Source: Sminthopsis crassicaudata
Lineage: Eukaryota
Assembly (NCBI RefSeq): GCF_048593235.1
Contig: NC_133620.1
Span: 276,287,765 to 276,351,764 of the forward strand
Direction of reading: 5' to 3'
Length of the DNA: 64,000 nucleotides
Position numbers and translations under genes: made by a program. Below, one piece after another: positions 37,101 to 51,636 of this stretch; within the stretch, counting starts at the first letter, position 1; every line of letters begins with the position of its first letter. The notes under the pieces were generated by a model. That model made no database searches. It was not told the DNA's origin and saw only the letters and a list, made by a program, of their open reading frames with translations.

Positions 37101-38123
37101 AGACCTCAGACCTGGCCTCAGAGCTTTTGATGCAAGCACTTAAGCCCCTCACCGCAGGGCTTGGCCCCCTGACCCTGCAGAAAGGCCAGGGTCTCCCCCC
37201 TGGGGGTAGGTAATAGCAGCTTGAGACTTCTCTGCCCTAATGCCCCTCAGGACAGTTCGGGGAGTTGTAGAAGGGGAGGAGAAGGAAAGAGCAGGGGGTT
37301 CTAGGTCTTACTCCCTAGCCTAAGGAGAAATGCCCTGCCTCCAGATCCCATAAGTCAGAGAAATATATGAGTATACATGTGTGGGGGGGGTGTCTCAGGT
37401 GTGCTGCGGCTCCGGAAGCTGGAGAAGGAGCCTGGGGGGGAGGCCTTGTGGCTGCTCCCCCCGCAGACATACCTGAGTGTGGAGGAGGATGAGTGCCGAA
37501 CCCTGGAGAGGAAGAGGAACCTCCTGAGCTGCCTCCTTGTCCGAATCCTCAAAGCCCACGGCGAGAAAGGCCTGCATATTGATCAGCTTGTGTGTCTGGT
37601 ACGGGGGAAAGAGGTCCCTGAAAGGTGGTGACCTAGGGGTTCTCTAGGGAGTGGTTATTGGGAAGCAGCATCTGCATATCCAGCTCCATAATGAAGAGGC
37701 CCCCCGGGGAAGGGGCACGTGTGCACCCACGGGGCTTTCTTGTTCTGAGGGGGGATTCCCATGGAGAATCAGGGTGGGATGACTGTGATCTTCGGGTGTC
37801 CCTAGGTGCTGGAGGCCTGGCAGAAGGGCCAGTCTTCACCCAGAGAGCCGGGCAGCAGCGCGGGTGGGGAGGAGGAGTGCAATGGGGCGGATGTCCTCTC
37901 CTGCATCCTCCATCTCCTGGGGCAGGGTTATGTTCGAAGGCAGGAGGACTGGCCCCAAGTCCTGGCATACGCAGCCCCGGAGCCAGAGGGGCCTCCCCTT
38001 GCGCCCCCCAACCTGGTTGCCTTAGGACCTGCCCCACCCTCTACCTTCCACACCCTGGAGATCCGAACTCGCACAACCCCCAGCCCCTCTCCTCCCACGC
38101 GGACTTTTTCCACCTTCCGATAG
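10143..38123 (+). CDS. CUL7: Cullin-7, 1685 aa predicted, 25 coding exons: 10143-10746, 11129-11283, 11399-11920, 12387-12525, 12703-12899, 22479-22773, 23412-23622, 24992-25097, 25478-25705, 26463-26553, 26742-26910, 27259-27364, 27641-27736, 28754-28929, 29223-29356, 29657-29836, 30218-30327, 30411-30593, 30700-30860, 31029-31266, 32901-33069, 35883-36022, 37076-37205, 37399-37598, 37806-38123
   Basis: All introns are GT-AG and the exons total 5058 nt in frame. Domains seen: N-terminal [21 protein letters not shown] domain ([43 protein letters not shown]), DOC/APC10 domain ([23 protein letters not shown]), cullin domain, and neddylation-site region ([17 protein letters not shown]). The CUL7-type end ([13 protein letters not shown]) has no RBR module. 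Position between MRPL2 and RRP36 matches human CUL7. Confidence 0.93.
13127..13375 (+). pseudogene. Decayed duplicate (pseudoexon) of CUL7 coding exon 6 (22479-22773)
   Basis: Follows a caatag acceptor. With frameshifts corrected it reads [54 protein letters not shown], versus [54 protein letters not shown] for the intact exon. Read in phase 0 it stops at TGA 13154-13156. Confidence 0.8.
14160..14295 (-). mobile_element. WSINE1-type SINE (antisense)
   Basis: Reverse complement of the WSINE1 head and core, with a T-rich tail at ~14160. Confidence 0.7.
15480..22075 (+). mobile_element. Degraded near-full-length LINE-1 (ORF1 ~15900-16890, ORF2 ~17430-22070) with nested L1 3' ends (17818-18193, ~19555-19940) and a WSINE1 (20050-20195)
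   Basis: ORF1-like [17 protein letters not shown] near 16640-16700; endonuclease start VNVNGMNS near 17430; ORF2 C-terminal CPS..EWLNK motif near 21985; A-rich + strand; many stops and frameshifts. Boundaries approximate. Confidence 0.85.
22240..22400 (+). mobile_element. WSINE1-type SINE immediately upstream of CUL7 coding exon 6
   Basis: GGCTCAGTGGATAGAGCACTAGCCCTGGAATCAAGAGG..; (AAC)n tail. Confidence 0.75.
27770..27975 (+). repeat. (GA)-rich polypurine low-complexity tract
   Basis: Runs of GAGA/GACAGA/GGGA in the CUL7 intron after coding exon 13. Confidence 0.85.
28548..28685 (+). mobile_element. WSINE1-type SINE
   Basis: GGGCAGATAAATGGCACAGTAGA..GATCCTGGGCAAGTCACTTAGCCCCAGTTGCC. Confidence 0.7.
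29347..29490 (+). repeat. Degenerate repeats of the exon end / donor motif ACTGCCCCTG|GTAAC
   Basis: Copies at 29347, 29386, ~29440 and 29476. Confidence 0.7.
31361..32640 (+). repeat. 37-bp GC-rich minisatellite, about 30 copies, in the CUL7 intron after coding exon 20
   Basis: Unit GAGGTGAGGTCTGGGGCCGGGG(A/G)CCCTTTCCTAGGAG; period 37 confirmed directly (31801 vs 31838); some 34-bp variants; interrupted once by a duplicated unique block (~31553-31675). Confidence 0.97.
33761..33777 (+). promoter_or_regulatory. CTCF-like motif
   Basis: TGCACCAGAGGGCGCAC resembles the CTCF core; motif match only. Confidence 0.4.
36070..36910 (-). mobile_element. Antisense L1 3' fragment
   Basis: Reverse L1 3' UTR/ORF2-end sequence similar to 5600-6150. 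Confidence 0.7.
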
Positions 38124-38618
38124 CCCAGCACCTGAGGCGATCTCTGGGGTAACCGGATCCGGGACTGAGCACAGTGCATGCTGTAGGGAGGCTTGGGAAG
38201 GGAAAGCGGGAGTTGTCACCACGACCCGGAAGGAGGCAGCCCCGGGCACCGGGGAGGAAGGGCAGTCGTTAGGGAGAGGTCTCGAGGCCATTTAGATGCC
38301 AAACAACTTGTAGGCACACCGAGTCACTGGAAAGAGCACCAGGCGGGAGTCTGGGAAGACCTGGGTTGGAATCCCTACCTAGAGACACTAAGTAGTTGGG
38401 CGACTGCGGGCAAGTCAGATCATTCTGTCCCTGGGCCTGTTTTCTCAGCTGTAAAATGGAGATATATGCACTGCCTACCTCAAGGGGGTGCTGTGAGCCT
38501 CAGAGCCCTAGAGAAGGGAGGGGTGCTATTATTCTAAGGACCCGAGCACGCTGCACCAGGGGCTCCCTAAACCTGCACAGGGAGCTAGCTGCCCTGGCAC
38601 GCACTCTCCAGTGATCTA

Positions 38619-38770
38619 CCAATAAGCCGAAGCCCCGCCCTCTCCGCTTCCCCCGGCCGACTCTGCGCGCGCCGCCGCGCTGCCTGGCCTCGGGTCCCTC
38701 CCGCATTGCAGCGGAGCGGCACGCCCAGTCCAGGGCCGAGCCCAGGCAGGGGCGGGGCCGCGGGACAGGT
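38619..38770 (+). promoter_or_regulatory. CpG-rich promoter candidate of the TMEM121-like gene
   Basis: CCAAT at 38619-38623, GC boxes at 38633-38640 and 38749-38757, dense CpGs, about 350 nt upstream of the ORF. Confidence 0.6.
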
Positions 38771-39127
38771 TCCTCCTAGTGGGGAAAGAGTTGAGAAAAG
38801 GGGAGATTCAAGGGGCCGTGTCCTTCATGAAGCGACGGCACCAACCGCAGGCTGCCCAGGGAGGTGACAGAGAGGGGCGAGAAGGGAGCAGGGGACCGAG
38901 GACAGTCCCTAGGGACAAGAGAGTGGGTATGCGTGGGCCCAGGGTGGAGGAGGGAGGCTCAGGCAGGCAGTAGGGGAAGGATACCCTAAGAGAGTGGGAG
39001 GAGAGGCTCAGCACCTTAGGACCCAAGGCAGGGGCAAGACGAAGGGGAATGGGAGCTAGAGACAGAGCAGTAGGCAAAAGGCAAGAAGGGATGCCCAGCT
39101 GTGGGTGGGCACGAAGGGCTTGGCAGG

Positions 39128-40000
39128 ATGGCATCCTCTTGTCCCACATGGCTGGTAGTAGGCCTCATTTCAGGAAGCATGCTGCTGGCCGATGGTTATC
39201 TCCTGGGACAGAGCCCAGGAGGTTGGTGGCTGGGTCTGGTGTTGCTGCTTTCCGTAGGCAACATCTGCCTGATCTTGGTGCTTCGCCCTGTGATGGCTAG
39301 TGCCAGTACCCAAGCCCGTACCACCCGGCGGAGCTGCGCCATGTTGCTCTGGTTTCTCTACATCTTTGTATTAGAGATGAAGGTCTACTTCATTTACCGG
39401 AGCTGCCGGGCTGAGGGTCACTGCCCCGGGCCCCCCGCCCGCCAGGCCTTCACCCTGGTGCTAGCCCTCAGTGTCCCTGGACTCTTTGCCCTGCTGGGGT
39501 CTCCAAAGATGCCCGAGATCCTGTCAACATTCCGATGGCGAGAACTCCGGAGCCACCTGCTGTGGGTGGTCATGGACTTGCTGGATGTTTTAGACATACA
39601 GGCAGGGCTGTGGGAGCCACCTCAGAGGGTGTTGCCCTTCTGGGCAGAGGGCGTCATCTTCTTCTACTGCTATGCCCTGCTGCTCTTGCTGCCATGTGCA
39701 GCCCTGGGTGAGCTCAGTCTGCAAGGCCCACAGCCCCTGCCACATCGCATGGTGCTCTACCCTCTTCTCAGCCTGCTCACGGTTAATCTGGCTACAAGCC
39801 TCATCCGAGCCACTCATCTCCTCCTGTTCCACGATACCTATGTCTCCAGCATCTTTTTAGGAAAGAACCTGCTGGCCTTGGCCCTCAAGCTCTGCATGTT
39901 TCTGCAGTACCGGAAACAGTGGCTTTCTGGTCCACCATCAACCCAGCCGCCCACTGACCCTGGCCTTCTAGGCCCAGCTCAGGCTGTGAGGCCAACATGA
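39128..40000 (+). CDS. TMEM121/CECR6-family multi-pass membrane protein (TMEM121-like paralogue), 290 aa, single coding exon
   Basis: ATG 39128 is in strong Kozak context (cAGGATGG); the ORF track start at 39101 is a GTG. Family motifs seen: AMLLWFLYIFVLEMKVYFIY, DLLDVLDIQAGLWEPP, LPFWAEGVIFFYCYALLLLLPC, MVLYPLLSL, SSIFLGKN..KLCMFLQYRKQ. About 6-8 hydrophobic segments; no stops or frameshifts. Confidence 0.9.
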   Translation: MASSCPTWLVVGLISGSMLLADGYLLGQSPGGWWLGLVLLLSVGNICLILVLRPVMASASTQARTTRRSCAMLLWFLYIFVLEMKVYFIYRSCRAEGHCPGPPARQAFTLVLALSVPGLFALLGSPKMPEILSTFRWRELRSHLLWVVMDLLDVLDIQAGLWEPPQRVLPFWAEGVIFFYCYALLLLLPCAALGELSLQGPQPLPHRMVLYPLLSLLTVNLATSLIRATHLLLFHDTYVSSIFLGKNLLALALKLCMFLQYRKQWLSGPPSTQPPTDPGLLGPAQAVRPT

Positions 40001-40262
40001 CCTGCTCTGGTTGTGCAGGGAGATGGGATGGACATGGACTATCCCCCTAAGCTATCACTTTCAACAGCACAACTCGCCTGAGTCCTTTCACCTTCAACCT
40101 GGACCTGCAGATTGGAACTGTGAGGCAGGACCTGTCTACAGGTCTGGTGTTTTAAACCAAGTATTCTCTGCAGAGGCTTGAGAGGGTCTTTTGTCAATAT
40201 GCTGTCCAAATCAAAGCAGTCTGATGCAGGATGAGGTCGTCCTCAAGTGTCAGACTCAGCAC

Positions 40263-40268
40263 AATAAA
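40263..40268 (+). terminator. AATAAA polyA signal for the TMEM121-like gene
   Basis: First AATAAA on the + strand after the CUL7 stop, 263 nt after the TMEM121-like stop. Confidence 0.65.
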
Positions 40269-41133
40269 GGTACAACTGACGCCTGAGGGGTTTTGACATC
40301 TCTGGTTTGGGGACTGAAGGCAGGGAAGGATAGAGGAATAGCGGGAGGAAGGATAACATTACATTCTTAGCATGTAGAGACTTCCTTTGGGCAGAAGAGA
40401 CTCCTGAAAAGAGTAAACCTCTGCCTTAGTATCCCAGAATGATTCCCAGCGAGGTGACCAACTATGGGGCTCATATCTTTCCTGAAAAGATAATGTAAAC
40501 TAAAAAGCTAGCTTTCCCCCTTTATCTCCTACTCATTCCCACATGCCATATATTATTCCTATAAGACTCAATAACTGTGAACATCTCTTTCACCTCCCAC
40601 TCTTAAAAACTTAAGAAACAAAGACAAAAGATGTGATCAAGTGTTTACAGAAGTGTTTATAGTACCCTAGCACTAAGTACAGAATTCCTGAGCCTTCTCT
40701 TAACCCTGGCCAAGGGACCAGGGTACAACCTCCAGTTATCCACTAATAACCCCTCAAACTCCTTCCTTTTGCATAAAGTTGTCCCCTAAAAAGGCACTTC
40801 CTTCCCTGAGGGAAGAGAGGGAACCACAATTTGATCAGAGGAATCCATATGGAGCCAGACTAAGCCTATCAGTCTGAAGTATTTTCTTTCTTTTGCCTTA
40901 ATGATTAACCAAAACCCCAGACAGACAGCAGCAACACTTTGGCTGACCAGATCTATCCACTGCCACGAAGCCCCAGATCCCGGTGTCCCAGGGCTTACAG
41001 TACTCAACCAAGGGTAGAAAAGCAGAACCACAAGGCACTAAGTTCGTTCCAAGACTGCCTTCACAGACATTGTCCCAGTGAGGAAGAGGCCAAGCTGGAA
41101 AGGGACAGGAAAGGACTAGCCTAGCCCCTTTAT

Positions 41134-43663
41134 TTAGTCCTTGCCTGGGGGAAGCCATCTTCGGTCTTTTCCAGCATTTCGGCGCCTCTTTCTGCTCAAG
41201 AAACTCTCCAACTTCTGGCTTCGCTTTAGCTTCTTGTATTTTTCAGCCAGTGCCAGCTGCCTCTGTTCAGCTAATATTAAGAAGAATCAGGAAGAAAATG
41301 TGAGCTATGGTAAGATCTCACCAGCTACTGTTTAGTTTTAAGGGACCCATGGGATGTGCTGGCCTAGTGCATCTCTCACTCTGTGTGGTCCCAGAAAGTC
41401 AAGAGTCCCTTCTACCATTCTCTTATTTTCTCCTCTCAGACCCTGCTTCAGATAAAAGCAGAACCTAATACCTGTTCTTAAAAACTTGTTCTTCACACAC
41501 AAGTTTTTCACCATCTCTACTACAGGGCCCTTCTCCACATGAGTTTTCACCAACAGACATGACCTGTTCAATCAGTTACACAATAGCCACACTAAAGCCT
41601 TGAAGGCTATTTCCTCTACTCACATTTCTTCAAAAAGTAAGGCCTATGACCCTGCTGGGCCTGGGCTCTCTGTTCCCGTTTCAAGGCCAGGCGCTGCTCT
41701 TGCTGCCGCTGCTGCTCCTGTTGAGCAGCCTCCTGCTGATCCTAGTGGAAAAATGGTCAAAGTGTATCAGATTCCATAAAGGAGAGGAGTCATACAGAGA
41801 ATATGTATGAATGTCTTATTACTCACCATTCTGTGGAGCAGTTGCTTCAGCTTTTCCTGTTCTTCTCCTGGCTTGCTCTTCTTTAGATGCTTTGCCACCA
41901 ACTGTAAAGCTGAGACCAGGGTTAGGAATAACCTGTATCCTTCTTATCCCTTTTATCCATAAATCTAGGCTCAAGTTTACCCTACTTTCCCCATCAACTC
42001 CCAAAGCCTAGTCCCTGTGTGCACCTCCTTTTCCTTTGCACGATACTCATTCAAAAATCTGTATGTCTTCTCAAACACTTCAGGATTATACTCCCCTGAC
42101 AAGTCATCAAATCGAGGGTCCCGGGCCACCTGTGAAGAATATCAAAAGGAGTGAAAAACAAGATCGGGCTTTTTCTTCTATTTTACCCAAACAGCCTGTG
42201 AAAAACTGTTATTCATCCATTAGGTGGCTATTATATAACACTGAGAGAAATAACAAAGTTTAGAAAAAGTCTCTAAAGTTACTTCATATAACTTGTAGAA
42301 GATGGACTGGAAAGTAAGGTGAAAGAGCAGGTTATGTATCAGAAAACATCGGATGGAAGAAGACTTTGAGATAAAACACAATAGTAGAAGTTCTTAACTT
42401 TTTTATGTCATGGACCTTTTTGACAGTCTAGTGACTCAGAATAATGCTTTTAAATGCAAGAAAGAACCTATGATTACAAAGAAAACAATTGTTTTGAAAT
42501 GCAATTTTTGAAAATGTTTAAGAAAAACTTGACTCCAAGTTAAGAATCCTGTCCATTAGCAGATAAAAGGAAAAGGATATTTTAAGCACAAGGAAAGGCA
42601 CTAACGAAAGCATAGTGTAACTGGAGACAGTGATTCAGTTCCTCAGGTGTTTTATGCATTACGGTGTCAGTTATCAAAGGCACTGAATGGCAGGTAAAGG
42701 AGCCTGAACTTTTTACTCAATGGGACAGTAGTAGAGACCTCCGAAGTGGATTTTTCCATAGGAACAATATTAAGTCTGATACCAGTATAAAGGATGAATC
42801 ATAGAAACAGGAAGTAGAAGCAAGACAGACAAAATGAGGAAACTATTAACAACCCCACAGGTGATAATAAGGATCTGTAGCAATGGGTATTAACACACAG
42901 AAGGTGATGGAGTGAAAAATAAACAAACAGGAGTCATCAACGAGCCGAGTTAAAGAATGACAAATACACAATCTTCGCTATCCTCTTTCTATTCCAACCC
43001 AAACAATGGGCCGTGGGAATCTTGTCATGGCTGAGCCCTGATTTTTGTCTGCTCTGGGGGTCCCACCTTCTTTCTGACAGGAACGACCTGCCGCAAAAAC
43101 GGCACCCGGGTCTTCGAGGACATTTCCAGAGGCCTGAGGATGGCGGAGAGGAAGAGTCAGGGGAACGCCGGGTAACACCACTCAGTATGTCCTCTGCCCC
43201 GCCCACCCCGTCCCCCACCCCCGCCATCCCGAGAGGCCCAGGCTCATTGGGGAGTCGGGTTCCTGGGCGGCCCGCAGTCCTCGCCACCTCTGCTTCTCTG
43301 CGGCCCCGTGATCCCGCGTGGGCGCCGCCCTCCGCGGCTGCCCCTCCGATCGCGTCCCCGTCACCAGCTGCCGGTACTGTTTGGTCCCCACTCGGCGCTG
43401 AAGCTCCAAGAGCTCCTCGAAGGACATGGCGGCCAGATCTGAAAGAAGCAGCCGCCGGTCGCTCAGGGGGGTGCTCGGCCCGGCCTGACTCTACCTGAGC
43501 CCTCCCGAGAGCCGCTTCTCGTTCACTCCCACCCCACATTCCCGAGGTTCCAGGATTCCCGCCCGATATCAGCAGACCCACCAGCCTCGGTCCCGCCGCC
43601 ATTGGGCTCCCGAGGCCGACCAGGACAGGCCATGGAACAGCGCGACTTCACGGGTAACGGCAT
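41134..43663 (-). CDS. RRP36: rRNA biogenesis protein RRP36, about 244 aa. Exons (5'->3') 43663-43582, 43438-43288, 43133-43067, 42129-42025, 41901-41827, 41741-41624, 41270-41134
   Basis: Translation contains MSFEELLELQRRVG, RPLEMSSKTRVPFLRQVV, VARDPRFDDLSGEYNPEVFEKTYRFL, GHRPYFLKKSEQRQLALAEKYKKLK..KRRRNAGKDRR. Exons total 735 nt in frame. The start is uncertain (ATG 43663 or in-frame ATG 43633). Confidence 0.93.
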
Positions 43664-43689
43664 TTACAAGATAAAAATGCCACTCCAAA

Positions 43690-43800
43690 CACCTCCGGCA
43701 CTACTTCCGCCGCGGCCCTCGAAGCACCGCCCCTTCCGGCGGCACATTTGGCTATCAGAACGAAGCGTTTGCCGGAAGTAGGCCCGGCTCTGCCCTCTCA
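43690..43800. promoter_or_regulatory. RRP36 CpG promoter with ETS/GABP motifs
   Basis: CCGGAAGT at 43772-43779, plus ACTTCCG and CTTCCGG copies near 43703-43739, in CpG-rich DNA just upstream of the start codon. Confidence 0.65.
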
Positions 43801-44739
43801 AGGCGGAGCCAAAGTTGGGGCTTTGGGTGCTGGAGCAGGTGTGATCCAGCGGCGCTGCCGGCCTTTTAACTCCAAACAGGTCCCCGGAGTAGAGAGGCGA
43901 GGAGGCTCCTCGTGCCGTAACTACCTTATGGGCAGGTGAGAAGGCAGGTCACGTATGTTGGGCCACGTGGGTGTCACCCAGTCCAGCCTTGTGCTAGACC
44001 TCTGTCCCCAAGTCCCGTGTTTTTCTGCACCCCAGGCTTGGGCTCTTGGCCCCTTCACCTGGCGGACATTACACCCAGCCAGCCTGAGCCCGCACATTTG
44101 TTGTTACACGGCAGCCGAACCTTTACTCTTCTCCCAGTGACTCCTCACATTCCGTGTGACCTGTGGTCCAAACCTAGCATCACCTGCCCCTCCCCTTCCC
44201 CCTTTCCTGTCAACAAAACGTCAACTTCCGGGGAAAAGCCGAGGCTACCTAAGGCGAGCTCCCCAGTTCCTCACTTCAAATAATGTCGTTTCACCCTGGT
44301 GTCCACTGCCAACCCTTCCATTTAATCCAGCGCCCACTGAGGACCATCTGCCCCAGTCCTCAGCTGATCGTCTCTCCGTAAGCTTTGGCTTTTCCCCGTG
44401 ACCCACAGTGAACTGAGAGTGCCAGGAAGACTTCAAACACAGCCTCAGTCACTGGATGACCTTGAACACTCACTTACCCTCTGCCTCTGTTTCTTCTACT
44501 CCTGTGGAGATGGGGATAACAGCAGCACCTACCTCCTAAGGTGGTTGTGAGGATCAACTGAGGCAATAGTAGTAAAGCAAAGGGTGTCCACACATAGTAG
44601 GCCCTTAATACTTGTTCTCAACTTTAAAAGGCCTTTACTTGACCCTACTCTCAAACTATCTTATCCTTTTCTAGTAGCCAGACCCTAAGAAAATATTTTC
44701 ATCCCCACTCCACCTGTTCCCAGGATTCAACAGAAACTA

Positions 44740-46045
44740 TTCTCCAGAGGATATTTTTGTGGTGAAATCCAATGATTTTCTTAGTCCATGACCTCTTCAG
44801 ATGCTTCTACACTACTGGCATCTCCTCCTTCTGGCTACGTTTTCCCTAGATTTTCAAGGCCCTAGACTGTTCTATTGTGATTCCCTTCCTAGCAGTCGAG
44901 TCTTGTCTCCTTTGCAGGATCATCTTCTATGACTTGCCTCCTGGGTTCCATGAGCATCTCTCTGCAGATTACTTATTCAACCCCCACCTTCTCTCCTGAG
45001 CTCCAGTTCCACATCCTCAACTGCCTATGGGACAATTCATTCTTACCTAAATGACCCCCTCAAACAATTTTGTGACCTTTCTCCCTAAAAGCACCCCATC
45101 CAACTTCCTTATTTTGTTGAGGGCAATACTATTTTTCTGATGAACTAAGTTTTCTTCCCCCCCACCAACTCTTACATATACAGCTAACCAGTTACCTAGT
45201 CTTATTCCGTCTTCATCCATATCTCTTCTATCCTTTTTCCTTCACTCCCAGGGCTACTAGCCTGGACACTCATTTCTCTCTTAGGTTAATGTAATAGCCT
45301 AATTAGTCTCCCTTCATCCAATCTCTTCCTCTCCAAACCACCTCTTCCCAGAGCTGCTAAAATGACATTCTTGAATACCATGTAATTCCTATGCTCAAAA
45401 GCTATGTGTGGGGGCAGCTAGGTGGTGCAGTGGATAGAGCACCAGCCTTGAATTCAGGAGGACTAAAGTTCAAATCTGGTCTCAGACACTTAACACTTCC
45501 TAGCTGTGTGACCCTGGGCAAGTCACTTAACCCTAAGTCTCAGGGGGGGAAAAAAAAAAGCTATGTATGGCTCCCTATTGCCTCTAGAATACAAAGCCCT
45601 CTTTTGGCACTTAAAAGTCCTTCACAATGTAGATGAAGCTTATTCTTCCAGTCTGATCACGTTAATTCCTTTTCACATGTTCTACATTCTATAAAAACTG
45701 GCTTACTTGCTATTTCCCAAAGATGTATTTATTTCATACTTCATCTCCCTGTTTTTGCACAGTCTGTTTTTTATACCTGAAATGCTATACTCCTTCCCCC
45801 ACCCCTACACACTGCACACCTTCAAAAGTCCAGTCAAGTGCTACTTCCCCTTAGGGGTCTTTCCATTATTCTCAGTTGTTGGTACCCTGAAAATGATCTT
45901 TTATTGATTTTGCATAGATCTTGCACTTACTTATTAGTGAATGTTGTATTCCCCCCAGTAGAAGGTAAGCTCCCTGAAGGCAGAGACTGTCTCACTTTTT
46001 TTATTGCATCCACATCTAGCGCATTGTAGGCGCTTAATAAAGACT
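44740..46045 (+). mobile_element. L2 LINE remnant interrupted by a WSINE1 (45411-45555)
   Basis: Ends in the L2 3' signature TAGGCGCTTAATAAA. The SINE is flanked by AAAAGCTATGT(G/A)TGG at 45397-45411 and 45556-45570. Confidence 0.7.
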
Positions 46046-46867
46046 GACTGGCTTTGGTGACCGATTGGCTCTAGTTTGATGAGAAGTTGAAGGTCCAGTT
46101 CCGATCTCAGTCCCTTCCCTTCCGAAAAGCAGTGACTTCTCCCCAGCGTGTTGCTCTCCCTTTTTTGGAGGGGGCATCAAACCTACCGCCTCCATTTCAT
46201 CCTTCCACCCTCCAGAAGGACTGTCCATGTGCCCCACAAACAGACAACACTGCTTTGGGTTTGTACACATTTTTATAAAATCCGCGCTGGCTGGTTTTCA
46301 GGGAACAGTAACAACCTGGAAGGGGTAAGTGGGTCAGGAATGAGGGGAGGAAGGGATCACCTGATGGGCACCCCTGTCCCCAAGGAGGGTGAAGAGAGGA
46401 TTTCAATTCAATAGCTCTATACCTCTTAGCTCCCGGACACCACTCATGGCTCAGGCAGGGTTAAGGAGGTGGGGTTAAGGGTTTCTCCTTAAGGTGGAGG
46501 AAGCAGTGAAGTTATGCTTAGATACTGATGCTTCCTCACCTTCCCTCCCTCAAACCCCATAAAATAGGTGGATGCCTCAAACAGAGGGCAGATGCTAAGG
46601 AACAATCAAAGGGAAAGATGAGATGGATGGGGGAAGAGCACCAAGGGAGAGGGCCTGAGCCCCAGGGGAGAGGAGATAAGGGGAGGGCCCCAGTACTCCC
46701 CCAGCTGCCCCTCCAAAAGTCCACAGCACAGAAAAAAATCCCTAGTCCAGCACCTCCAGCTGCAGGGGAACAAAGTCCAGGGGCCCATGGTGGCAGGCTC
46801 GCAAATGATGGGAAGGGGTGGTGAGGACAGCAGCAGGATCAGTAGGGAAGGCAATGAAGGCTTCCCC

Positions 46868-49800
46868 CTACCCATGGGATGATGCAATGGGGCGGCTGAT
46901 GTTGCTGTTGGTGGTCATGGCAGTCAGCTCCCACCTGTAAAACCGGGAAGGGCAAAGAAGGCAAGAGATTGGATTAAGGTAAACAGAACAAGAAAGATTG
47001 TCGTACACTAAACCCAATCCTTCAAGGCTTCTAAAAGATCAACATCTTACTCCTTCCCTCCTCCACACAAACCTAGGCTTAATAGCAATTGAACTCCACC
47101 CATTAGTAAACCCTATACAACCCACTTTCCCCACCTCCACATCTGTACTGATATCCTGTTTATATTTGTATATTCAAATGTCTGAGCACCTGGAGAAAAG
47201 TGTGTTCATGGATCTGGTGTAAGCAATCAAGAAGGAAGAAGCAAAGAACAATTTATATTGCTTATAATTATGCTAGAGTTTTAAAAACTCACTATAGTGA
47301 CATCCTCTTGCCTCATTTTCTCCTTAAGACTATCAACAAACTGGCTAAGCTATATGTACTTGCATCCACACTCACCAACTGCACAGTATCTAAGACAGTA
47401 CTAAATAAATGGTACAGGATAGGATGGAACTAAGTATAGAAGGAGCAGGTATTCTTGTCCTCTCTCCTGTACCTGATATCATGGGGCAGACAGGTCTGGT
47501 CCAGGTTATACTGAATCACAGCCAGTTTGCACAAGGTCTTCAGGCTGGGACCTGAGGTAGAAAGAGAGTCAGGAGCTTAGGAAAGAGAACAGCCCTGATT
47601 TCCCTGCCCTAGGACTGAGTCCCTTTTTGCAAAAGAGTTTGGGGAATGGAAACACTTACTAAAGTCTAGAATGTGTAGGTCGGAGTGGTCCATAAGATCA
47701 AACTCATCTCCTAGGCCTTCTTCAGGAGAAGGACTATAGGTATTGAGAAAAATCATAATAAGGAAATGAACATTCCACCAAAATTCTTTTAAGCAAGTAT
47801 TATAGTCTCATGTCCCTCCCTGATCCCAAAAGTCCCTCCCCCACACCCCTCATCCTGACCTAGTGCCTCCAAAGAGGACAATCTTGTCTCCCACGATGCA
47901 ACAGCACTGGCGCCGGCGGGGGCATGGCCCCTTTCCCTTAGGCTCAATCTTCTTCCAAGAGAAGGACACTAAGGAGAAGTTGTGGAAAACACCAAATTCA
48001 ACCCCCTGCCTATTCCAACTACTCCCTCAATGAAGGCCAAGTACCCAGGAGCCACTCTTCTCACCCTGCTTGACCCTGGACAATCCTACCAGTCTTATTC
48101 TATGGATTTGCCCACTCCAACATACTAGACCTTTACCTGGGTTGAACTTCCAGAGGTCATGAAAATGCCGATTCAACCTTGCATTGTAGCCGCCAAATAT
48201 GTACAGCTCCCCATTATACCCAACTGGAAAAGGAAAAGAATGTTAAGAAAAGAGATTTAGGAAAAGAATTTTGGGTGGGGGGGTGATACTCACAGGCAGA
48301 GTGGCTTCTTCGGCCCTCAGGCAACAATGGGGTAGGTGGACACTCCAACCAGGCCTCAGCCCTCGTGTCAAAGATACGTATTCGGTTACAATAGATCTCA
48401 TTATTGGAGTGAAAAGGTCCAAATCGGTCAGCTCGACCTCCAAAAACATACATGCGGTTGCCTAACATTGTGGCTGAGTGAAAGTCCCGCCACCGTGCAG
48501 GAGTGCCCTGAGAAGAGACAGAAATGGAGAGAAGATTCATTAGAAGAACTGGAATGGCTGTTTAAAGAAATAAAGTGACCATTCCTCCCGCTCCAACCTT
48601 ACAAAAAGAACAACTCTGATATCTTTTTCTACCACTTCTAAAATAAAGGTTCTAGTCTTTATTCTCTCATTGTTTATGGTTTTCAAGTCCTCCACTGGAA
48701 TGGAAGTGGGAACCAAGCATAAGTAATGAAGGAAAGGAAAAAAAGGGACTTGGCGAAATTCGGGATAATGTAAGAGCTTTAAGGAATAGTCTCCCCATTT
48801 ATTGTATGATTTATTGATCCAGGAATGAAAAAAATATATAAAGAGAATACAAAAGTACAGACCTTTGCCGAAATGAGGGTCCACGTCATGCTGCTGGTAT
48901 CCAGCTTATGGATATCATTGGAAAAACAGTCAGCCTAAATGGAGGAACGGAAATCCAGAGAGAGAGAAGCATAGAGAAAGAAAATGGAAATGAGAGGGAG
49001 AAAAAAGTTATTTCTTATTACCATCAAAGTCTAACAATCTAGTGAAGGCCTCCTACAAATTCCACATCCTTCTTTATATATATTCTTTAGTGTTCTCCAT
49101 TTTCCCTCATGGACTTACCAGCTGCTCGTAACCCCCGAAGACATACATGTTCTTGCCCAGGACACAGGCTGAATGTCCATCTCGGGCCCCTGGCACTGTT
49201 CCAGAAACCCTGGGTGTGAACCACTTGTGAGTATCTAAAGAAGAGCAGAGAATGTCAGGGTCTAAGTGGTCAATATTTTTCACTACTTCCTTGTCCTCTA
49301 GAGTCTTCTCATTCCTCCTTCCTAATATTTTAAGTTTCCCTCCTCCCCTCAAGATATGTACACAATCTGTACAAGTTCAGCAGCTGAGTCAATACTCACT
49401 GATATCAAAGCCATAGAGCACATTGCAGGCTCCTTCTGTGTCATTGCGTCCACCCCACAGGTAGACAGTGTCATCGATGAGGACGGCTGAATGTCCATAA
49501 CGCATGTAGGGCACTTCCCCAGCTTGTCCACTGGACCGCATTGGGGGCAGCTTCGTCCAACGAAGAGACACTGCAGGCATAGCTTCATTCAGATTTGGGA
49601 CCCTCCTGGCCTCCCCATCTTCCCCATCCACCTATGTCATGGATCTAGGATTAAAATACCATTCTTCTCCCTCCTCCTATAATGATGATATCTGTCAAAC
49701 TTTAATCGTCTGCCTTTTTCATCTTCCCTATTCCTATTTTTCTCAGAGCACTCAGTGCAATTTCAACTCACCTGCATTGAAGACATGTACATCAATCTGG

Positions 49801-49925
49801 CGTAATGTCTCATAGTCTTCTCCAGAGCAGTATCCTCCAAATGAATACACCCGGTGCCCCACAGCCACTGCTGCGTGATTCACCCTGCGGGGCCCGCCCT
49901 CCAGGTGCACCGTCCACCGTAACAT
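46868..49925 (-). CDS. KLHDC3: Kelch domain-containing protein 3, 380 aa. Coding exons 49925-49772, 49570-49400, 49234-49119, 48934-48863, 48507-48294, 48223-48137, 47968-47860, 47733-47660, 47551-47473, 46934-46868
   Basis: MLRWTVHLEGGPRRVNHAAVAVGHRVYSFGGYCSGEDYETLRQIDV...; kelch repeats; C-terminal SPSLKTLCKLAVIQY box; ends SRPIASSHG*. Exons total 1143 nt in frame. Non-coding exon 1 donor at 52448/52447; exon 2 acceptor at 49993. Confidence 0.97.
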
Positions 49926-51636
49926 TCCCCTTTGATGTGGCTATCGACACATGCCCGCACAGCTCGGCCAGCCTGCCCCGCTGTCTCTGCTACCTGTGCA
50001 GATACAGGTAAAAGGCCTTTAGACAAAACCTGTCCCCAGAGCTAAGCCCAATTCAGAATGCTTTGACTACCTCTGTCTTTCAGTTATCATTCTAGCACCC
50101 CTCCCACATCATCCTTCTTTGAAAAGATCAGTCATAGTCCAGGTGACTACCCCCACCTCAGGGGAGCTACAGAGGTCAGAGTTGATCCTAACTCCATTCC
50201 CCAACAGCCTGAGGCAACCCTGACCTAATTCTTCCTCAGTATAGGATACACTGACCAAAGGCTCAAGACATCTAAGGACTCTGGGGATACAGGGGGCCCA
50301 TATACTATCCCCAGATGGGGAAAAGCTCCTAGAATGATTCAGTGTGCTCCTCAGCTAGGGATTGCAGAGATAAGAAACAGATCCTGTTGCCTCTGTTACC
50401 AGGCTTCTTAAGTGCCAAAAGTTCTTAAGGATCCTGGGCACTCGCTAAAGTGGGGAGAGGGACACTGAAATACCCAGGGGCTATTAATAACCTAGCCAGC
50501 CTAGACAACCGCTGTAGTCTGGCATTACTTCCAGGAAAAAAAGCTTCAGGTCCTTGGAATGGGTAAGGCACTCATCTCCTTCTCCAGGCTCCTTGTCCTG
50601 GTTGTACCTTGAGAGGACACAGTGTGCCCAGACTCAGGAAACTCCAGTATAACTAGGGGCAGCTTGGCAATAATAGGCAGCTCCCACCAGGTTCTGTAAT
50701 TGGAGTACCTGGGACTCCCCATGGGCACAAGGAGTTCCCCTGACAGATGAATGTGGAACCTGGCCAGGACCAGGAACTCAAGCTTGTTAAGAGTATGGGT
50801 AGGGACAGGCTTTTGCCAAGCCATGTTGTCTGAGGGGCAGAAAATAACTGCTGTCACCCCTCCCCCAACTGGGCCCTGGAGGGAGTCTGGTAAATAGGAA
50901 AAGCAAAGATAGCCTTTGGGAGGTTAAGAACGAGACCCTGGCCACAGACTCGCTACCAAACAAAGCAATCAGGTGATTAACAAGCCTCTATTCAGCACCA
51001 ACTAGGCAATGATAACCATTTATGTTTGTGTGAGAAAACAACGGATATAATATGCCTTTGAGTCCAAAGGGTCTGCATTTAGAGGTTGCCTTTGAGCTGC
51101 ACGTAGTCTTAAAACCGAACTATAATGGTCTGGCAAGAACAGCAACTTGAGAAAATTAAATGCCATTTTGTTAGATTATAGTTGATGACGTCCCAACTTT
51201 ACGTATTATCTGTCTGACCAAGGGCAAGCCCCTTAGTTTTCTCGTCTAAAAAATGGAGGAGGAGGAACGACCCCACCCCTAAGATCCCTTCTCCCCTAAA
51301 TCACATTACGTAACATGTGGGCAAGTCATTTAACCCTCCAGTGTCCTAAGCACACTTCACGTTATATAAACTGCAGACAAATCTGTGCGTGCAGCAGTAC
51401 CAGGATTAGTCATTCTGACAGTCCCATTTGTTAGGACTGCAGTAGGGAGAAAAGGACGCATTTAGCCAGATGGCTTCTGAGGCCCTTTCCGACTCGGAGA
51501 ATCGGTTATTCCGAGTTTCCGACAGACAAAGATCAGAGTCTGGATCAAAACAAAAACAAATAAAAAATCTCCCCACCCACCACCCCCGGAAAGCTTCAAG
51601 GAGCTGCCCAGAATCCAGTGACAAAAAGAAAGGTCA

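Follow-up and report, generated by a model that had tools for sequence, protein, structure and literature searches.

Functional reports on the CECR6/TMEM121 family are confined to TMEM121, also known as 'hole', which has been described as a membrane protein with six passes and as a suppressor of MAPK/ERK signalling; for the human protein an N-terminal basic ERK-docking (D) motif as well as a Pro-rich C-terminal tail are described (PMC9366253). A relative of TMEM121, TMEM121L, is documented in non-mammalian vertebrates. According to the legend to Fig. 1C of Weng et al. 2020, NPAS4L of chicken has KLHDC3 as its neighbour on one side and RRP36 together with TMEM121L on the other; the order KLHDC3-NPAS4L-RRP36-TMEM121L is also given for Anolis and zebrafish, and these genes are called missing in mammals (PMC7604627). 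In a full-text literature search the name TMEM121L was found in this publication alone. Here, we analysed a stretch of 64,000 nucleotides from the marsupial Sminthopsis crassicaudata (contig NC_133620.1, positions 276,287,765 to 276,351,764 of the forward strand), hereafter the window, which contains an open reading frame (ORF) at positions 39128-40000 of the plus strand. This ORF very probably encodes the marsupial orthologue of TMEM121L, one of three ancient branches of the CECR6/TMEM121 family in jawed vertebrates, since genomic position, literature and tree agree on this identity.

The marsupial gene resembles non-mammalian TMEM121L in its Pfam family, its convergent position relative to RRP36, its clade (in the tree without long-branch outgroups) and its single main coding exon. 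The proteins of this branch, here termed clade C, are about 50% identical to the marsupial protein and are otherwise slow-evolving. With TMEM121 (human 14q32.33, clade A) the marsupial protein shares the predicted fold, the core motifs and the single coding exon at 48-51% identity. However, TMEM121 is a separate gene of 325 amino acids (aa) with a longer Pro-rich tail and, as described for the human protein, an N-terminal ERK-docking motif, and it is more strongly conserved among marsupials (99.7% identity compared to 87-92%). Members of clade B belong to the same Pfam family with about 40-50% identity, but they are found at another locus, inside MRPL11 on the opposite strand, and form a distinct clade (support 100/100) that comprises squamate and turtle proteins named 'TMEM121-like' and a teleost group of 340-360 aa. 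TMEM121B/CECR6 (human 22q11.1) has the Pfam family and a related predicted fold in common with the marsupial protein and differs by its length of 572-578 aa with long insertions.

The coding sequence and its conservation in marsupials

The single-exon coding sequence runs over 290 codons without interruption from an ATG at 39128 to a TGA at 39998-40000, as described in an earlier note that had been made on this DNA from the sequence alone. Besides the reading frame itself, it is backed by a Pfam match, a gene call, dN/dS and RNA contigs. The start codon lies in the context GGCAGGATGG (A at -3, G at +4), which is the same in Dromiciops, and the strong Kozak context claimed before was thus verified. 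The encoded protein matched the Pfam profile PF14997 (CECR6_TMEM121) over positions 3-194 of 194 with E=1.3e-45 and 156 bits at a cut-off of 25, in line with the earlier assignment to this family. Kyte-Doolittle analysis revealed about eight hydrophobic segments and the AlphaFold2 model nine helices, which is compatible with the six to eight segments counted previously. The 290-aa product is already an exact gene call in GCA_048593235.1 (chromosome CM109184.1), where it is located between CUL7 and a call that covers RRP36 and KLHDC3. In the window the gene sits between the 3' ends of CUL7 (plus strand, stop codon at 38121-38123) and RRP36 (minus strand, coding exons at 41137-43490), convergent with the latter, and the placement between these two genes given in the earlier note was therefore correct.

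Genes annotated as 'TMEM121-like' are found in ten other marsupial species, i.e. in eleven including Sminthopsis. The models of Monodelphis, Gracilinanus, Sarcophilus, Antechinus, koala, wombat, tammar and Trichosurus share one 90% cluster, and those of Macrotis and Dromiciops form separate clusters. The order CUL7, TMEM121-like, RRP36/KLHDC3 was seen directly in Gracilinanus, Macrotis and Dromiciops, which represent three other marsupial orders, and the Dromiciops ORF is intact with a slightly longer C-terminus. Moreover, a 325-aa TMEM121 is separately annotated on other contigs in Sarcophilus, Antechinus, Monodelphis, koala, Macrotis, Dromiciops and Sminthopsis. As TMEM121 proper is annotated in most of the marsupial species that have the TMEM121-like gene, the window gene is a paralogue, as had been proposed, and not a relocated TMEM121. 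A one-to-one orthologue of TMEM121 moved by rearrangement is ruled out by this second gene, which forms a clade of its own with eutherian TMEM121 (100/100).

Selection was estimated from one pair of sequences, Sminthopsis and Dromiciops. With dN=0.055-0.059 and dS=0.34-0.46, omega was 0.12-0.18 and thus far from a value of about 1; it amounted to 0.10 over codons 1-262 compared to 0.29 in the C-terminal tail. Judged by these substitution rates, purifying selection acts on TMEM121L throughout the crown group of marsupials. Together with the models in eleven species this upholds the previous reading of a family member kept in marsupials.

TMEM121L as one of three branches of the family

Clades were derived from protein searches and maximum-likelihood (ML) trees, with TMEM121B sequences outside the tree sample. 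The trees divided the CECR6/TMEM121 family of jawed vertebrates into three well-supported clades. Clade A, TMEM121 proper, includes mammals, frogs, a ray and some teleosts. Clade B includes squamates, turtles, salamanders, caecilians, coelacanth and ray-finned fishes, and its address is an MRPL11 intron on the opposite strand, as seen in Eublepharis (locus L003, 10001-11320) and Danio aesculapii (locus L004, 10001-11038). This nesting has been kept since the bony-vertebrate ancestor. Clade C, TMEM121L, includes sharks, ray-finned fishes, coelacanth, lungfish, a salamander, a caecilian, a crocodilian, turtles, squamates and birds, and lies beside RRP36 in Numida. Clades A and C are distinct genes because Umbra has copies in both and the genus Triplophysa has copies in all three clades, although in different species.

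In the guinea fowl Numida (locus L006) the gene order is PACS (-), TMEM121-like (+), RRP36 (-) and a PAS-domain gene (-) taken as NPAS4L. TMEM121-like (10001-12208, plus strand) and RRP36 (15006-18912, minus strand) are arranged tail-to-tail at a distance of 2.8 kb, and the PACS-family gene (1-5235) is located just upstream of the bird TMEM121L. The same tail-to-tail adjacency was found in the window, where the TMEM121L stop at 40000 (+) faces the RRP36 stop near 41137 (-). The upstream neighbour differs, as it is CUL7 in marsupials and the PACS-family gene in guinea fowl, and NPAS4L is gone in marsupials. Judging from the gene order in other vertebrates, the interval between RRP36 and KLHDC3 (43650-47400) corresponds to the NPAS4L slot of birds, lizards and fish. 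A tblastn search of the whole window with translations of the Numida NPAS4L exons revealed no NPAS4L remnant in this interval, which is consistent with the published loss of NPAS4L in mammals. Since this trait belongs to a neighbouring gene, its absence is no argument against the orthology of TMEM121L. Marsupials kept TMEM121L and lost NPAS4L, and the latter was presumably lost in all mammals.

Alternatively, the window gene could be a mammal- or marsupial-specific duplicate of TMEM121, generated as a retrocopy or by segmental duplication, which landed beside RRP36 by chance and was retained after a phase of rapid evolution. We consider this improbable. The intronless coding region, the identity to TMEM121 of about 50%, which is as high as to any other branch, and the very long stem branch speak for such a history. 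However, the lack of introns is uninformative with respect to a retrocopy because a single coding exon is found throughout the family, TMEM121 included. Moreover, position and orientation are those of guinea fowl TMEM121L and, as far as the figure legend cited above describes them, of the chicken, lizard and zebrafish genes. When the cyclostome and tunicate outgroups were removed from the tree, the marsupial proteins were placed inside clade C (96/93), apart from the mammalian TMEM121 clade (100/100), with clades A and B each supported by 100/100. The best blastp scores of the marsupial proteins were likewise obtained with clade-C proteins. With the outgroups included, constraining the marsupial proteins to clade C or to its sauropsid members raised the log-likelihood (lnL) by 10.8 over the free tree, compared to 1.3 for clade A and 0.4 for mammalian TMEM121, which is a preference for clade C of about 10 lnL units. 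The earlier suggestion of an old retrocopy that had gained a promoter was also not supported: the gene occupies the ancestral TMEM121L slot beside RRP36, falls inside clade C and shows no A-tract 3' of its poly(A) signal, and a processed retrocopy was therefore rejected.

Nevertheless, several observations weigh against an assignment to TMEM121L. With cyclostome and tunicate outgroups, the free ML tree gave the marsupial proteins no resolved position at the vertebrate base, beside the long branch of the cyclostomes; this tree carries a long-branch warning from the tool. Approximately unbiased (AU) tests rejected no alternative placement (p = 0.51-0.79), including the grouping with mammalian TMEM121 (p = 0.51). 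Furthermore, adjacency to RRP36 was seen directly in one non-mammal, Numida, and is otherwise taken from the figure legend. The clade-C gene of Scomber had no RRP36 within 10 kb; at the Discoglossus, Scomber and Xenopus loci no neighbouring gene at all was present within this distance. The grouping with clade C is thus regarded as support for orthology and not as proof. As to the rate of change, in the tree from which the long-branch outgroups had been removed the stem branch of the marsupial proteins had a length of about 3 substitutions per site, compared to 0.02-0.11 for the crown branches, and the burst of change therefore came before the present constraint. What the earlier note had called an extra family member is indeed a retained one; it is not extra but an old paralogue of vertebrates whose orthologues range from sharks to birds.

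Neither a search of 5.8 billion proteins nor an exhaustive representative search returned a eutherian protein closer to marsupial TMEM121L than TMEM121, which is about 50% identical. To our knowledge, human CUL7 and RRP36 are only a few kb apart and no coding gene is annotated between them. On the basis of the protein databases, this human map and the statement by Weng et al. mentioned above, a eutherian loss of TMEM121L is likely.

The three clades also bear on the naming of genes in other lineages. All sauropsid sequences in our sample, which come from birds, a crocodilian, turtles and squamates and are named TMEM121 or TMEM121-like, belonged to clades B and C and none to clade A. If it follows this pattern, chicken 'hole' (TMEM121 in Swiss-Prot, Q8QFN3) may be an orthologue of TMEM121L and not of mammalian TMEM121. 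A TMEM121-like protein of the frog Discoglossus pictus (P0045) stands on a very long branch and matches clade-C proteins best. Clade C may have sped up in parallel in the two tetrapod lineages that keep TMEM121 proper, namely frogs and marsupials. With regard to the origin of the branches, paralogues of KLC, PPP2R5 and CRIP connect 6p21.1, 14q32 and 11q13. As for the PACS family, which is also represented upstream of bird TMEM121L, human PACS2 lies near TMEM121 (14q32.33) and PACS1 near MRPL11 (11q13). Clades A, B and C may be whole-genome-duplication paralogues on sister blocks.

TMEM121B was not among the 120 of 341 matches listed for a gecko query, an 813-aa tunicate query matched tunicates alone, and no clear TMEM121B was present among the 50 clusters returned by the exhaustive representative search. 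The word-indexed protein search was run with a length window that left out 578-aa proteins. One candidate, P0157, was rejected as TMEM121B since it is a clade-B fragment from a teleost contig of 1 kb.

Transcripts and neighbouring genes

Evidence for transcription was obtained from assembler contigs of four RNA-type runs (X1, X4, X10 and X14) from four studies, which are unstranded and have averaged depth. Contigs of all four runs covered the whole TMEM121L ORF, and the region is transcribed. In X10 and X14 the contigs ended at 40270 and 40280, respectively, right after an AATAAA at 40263-40268 that lies about 265 nt past the stop codon. In these two runs the depth was 0 at 40346-40542, up to the start of the RRP36 3' untranslated region (UTR) near 40637. 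These ends fit a poly(A) site on the plus strand, and positions 40001-40280 (+) are accordingly listed as the TMEM121L 3' UTR with a putative poly(A) site. The AATAAA at 40263 had been predicted before, and Dromiciops likewise carries an AATAAA, 197 nt 3' of the stop codon of its orthologue. Coverage in X1 and X4 extended further into RRP36.

A putative promoter is located at 38500-38899 (+). This stretch has a GC content of 0.66-0.675 and a CpG observed/expected ratio of 0.65-0.71, compared to 0.13-0.3 in the adjoining stretches, and contains a CCAAT box at 38619, GC boxes and an AATAAG at 38621; the CpG region with both box types described in the earlier note is thus present. One X1 contig begins at 38689, inside this CpG-rich stretch. 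TMEM121L may therefore have its own CpG-island promoter about 250-600 bp 5' of its ATG. As the contigs lack strand and the depth is averaged, transcription as such is observed, whereas a TMEM121L-specific promoter is proposed.

Two caveats concern the 5' side of TMEM121L. First, contigs in X4 and X14 are unbroken from the last CUL7 exon (37920) through the ORF, and the signal could partly stem from read-through of CUL7 or antisense read-through of RRP36. Between the CUL7 stop codon and 40263 the AATAAG at 38621, possibly a weak CUL7 signal, is the only poly(A)-like hexamer. Because there is no canonical poly(A) signal before 40263 and the contigs are unbroken, some CUL7 transcripts may carry the whole TMEM121L ORF in their 3' UTR. 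Second, an out-of-frame upstream ORF (uORF) at 39049-39300 (+), with upstream ATGs at 39049 and 39091, overlaps the main ATG and may limit translation despite the strong Kozak context. Both upstream ATGs and their contexts are kept in Dromiciops (locus L002, 9922 and 9964), and the conserved overlapping uORF might tune translation of TMEM121L.

These features would also be expected if the ORF was transcribed but non-functional, either as a passenger of CUL7, within a long 3' UTR or a read-through transcript, or as a slowly decaying pseudogene. The contigs unbroken from 37920 to 40280 in two runs, the missing canonical poly(A) signal and the upstream ATGs overlapping the start codon are all in keeping with such a passenger. 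However, omega of 0.12-0.18 was found at a dS of about 0.4, protein models exist in eleven marsupials spanning the crown group, and the ORF is uninterrupted in both the window and Dromiciops. In addition, 67 of 78 family-conserved residues are kept, Kozak context and poly(A) signal are preserved in Dromiciops, and an indel among individuals is in-frame. A non-functional ORF is hence very improbable, and the pseudogene reading was rejected on the basis of dN/dS, the intact ORFs and the kept family residues.

The RNA runs differed from the assembly at two sites of the coding sequence. At 39240 all four showed T>G, which leads to Val38Gly, with Gly being the residue of Dromiciops. After 39540 all four contained an additional in-frame AGA, so that the product is 291 aa long instead of the 290 aa in the assembly and has the 'REEL' form known from other marsupials. 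Both differences reflect either a minority allele in the reference individual or small assembly errors.

The last coding exon of CUL7 is located at 37806-38123 (+). Its TAG at 38121-38123 coincides with the end of the gene call at 38123, and its start at about 37806 was set by eye from the splice acceptor. Further upstream, an ORF near 10134 matched the Pfam family CUL7_CUL9_N. In all four RNA runs one contig departs at 37984 from the window sequence into letters that match nothing in the 64 kb; these probably belong to another transcript, e.g. of the related CUL9, or possibly to a chimeric contig. Just 3' of the CUL7 stop codon, at 38330-38510, a candidate core of a MIR-type short interspersed element was noticed by eye ('...ctgtaaaatgg...').

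RRP36 occupies 40637-43490 (-), with coding exons at 41137-43490 and a 3' UTR extending to about 40637. It was delimited by exon peptides, which also match RRP36 of Dromiciops and Numida, and by spliced RNA joints on the minus strand (CT..AC) at 41270/41624, 41740/41826 and 41901/42025; one contig spans 40637-41270. The stretch 43000-44000 is GC-rich and includes the 5' end of RRP36 (first coding exon at 43185-43490); it overlaps the former NPAS4L slot (43650-47400) with its right-hand part alone. Kelch-like exon translations identified the kelch-repeat exons of KLHDC3 at 47400-49940 (-). A gene call at 41134-49925 (-) with Kelch Pfam families merges RRP36 and KLHDC3. Such a 549-aa Kelch-domain product spanning both genes is the longest on record in four of four marsupial assemblies (Sminthopsis, Gracilinanus, Macrotis and Dromiciops) and seems to be a read-through or a merged model, not one gene.

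Protein conservation, possible function and implications

Across 44 family sequences including the marsupial protein, 46 alignment columns were invariant. Of the 78 columns with a conservation of at least 94% among jawed vertebrates, 67 are kept in at least eight of nine marsupial TMEM121L proteins. Seven conserved positions carry a fixed replacement in marsupials, namely D45N, Q91R, Y93C, L108F, S113A, R143H and R238Y. Identity to the family majority residue was 33% in the N-terminal 70 residues compared to 57% in the core. An AlphaFold2 model of the marsupial protein (pLDDT 70.9, pTM 0.70, 9 helices) matched the models of chicken, mouse and human TMEM121 in Foldseek with TM scores of 0.81-0.85 and 47-49% identity, and the predicted multi-pass helical membrane fold is thus common to both proteins. 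For human and mouse TMEM121B the TM score (by query) was 0.68 at 18-19% identity. A marsupial TMEM121B orthologue that had moved to a new locus, which the common Pfam family and the tree sample without TMEM121B would allow, is scarcely credible and was rejected on this structural comparison together with synteny and tree, both of which indicate clade C.

Regarding function, we can only argue by analogy. A search of the PDB with the model of the marsupial protein found no relative by fold, which makes any molecular activity a guess by analogy. Moreover, the ERK-docking motif of TMEM121 is not present in marsupial TMEM121L, in which residues 1-52 contain neither Lys nor Arg. Its tail comprises 25 residues with few prolines, in agreement with the shorter tail described earlier, has an omega of 0.29 and differs in length in Dromiciops. 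Because 67 of the 78 family-conserved positions are kept, the protein would be expected to retain the family's core, both in its membrane fold and in its activity. By analogy with 'hole', it might sit in the membrane and dampen MAPK/ERK-type signalling or serve as a scaffold for it. The coupling to signalling would probably be altered, as the protein lacks the N-terminal basic docking motif described for human TMEM121 and ends in a short Pro-rich tail. We therefore tentatively suggest a modulator of kinase signalling that is embedded in the membrane and has changed partners, a proposal that we regard as possible at best.

Likewise speculative is a marsupial-specific new function in place of a relic. 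In this scenario a burst of change on the stem, following the loss of NPAS4L and the gain of CUL7 as a neighbour, would have given way to purifying selection, and the gene would perhaps be co-transcribed or co-regulated with CUL7. The stem burst would have been about ten times the later rate and would include the seven replacements at positions conserved from sharks to birds as well as the loss of the N-terminal motif. A general rule, hinted at by Discoglossus, might be that clade C is freed of constraint wherever clade A is also kept.

The gene models are already public and the synteny of TMEM121L has already been published for non-mammals. What is new is the assignment of orthology to TMEM121L, its retention in marsupials despite being described as missing in mammals, and the structure of the family in three clades; the novelty is modest. 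The published impression that the RRP36-linked TMEM121L is missing from mammals like NPAS4L (cloche in zebrafish) is corrected, as marsupials keep TMEM121L under selection. Anonymous LOC genes named 'TMEM121-like' can thereby be assigned to an orthology group and given a history. The TMEM121 family, about which little is known, comprises three ancient branches in jawed vertebrates with distinct and stable genomic addresses. If chicken 'hole' indeed belongs to clade C, this would matter when results from chicken are carried over to human TMEM121. Finally, eutherian loss and marsupial retention of TMEM121L would represent a natural experiment on the function of a family without known biochemistry.

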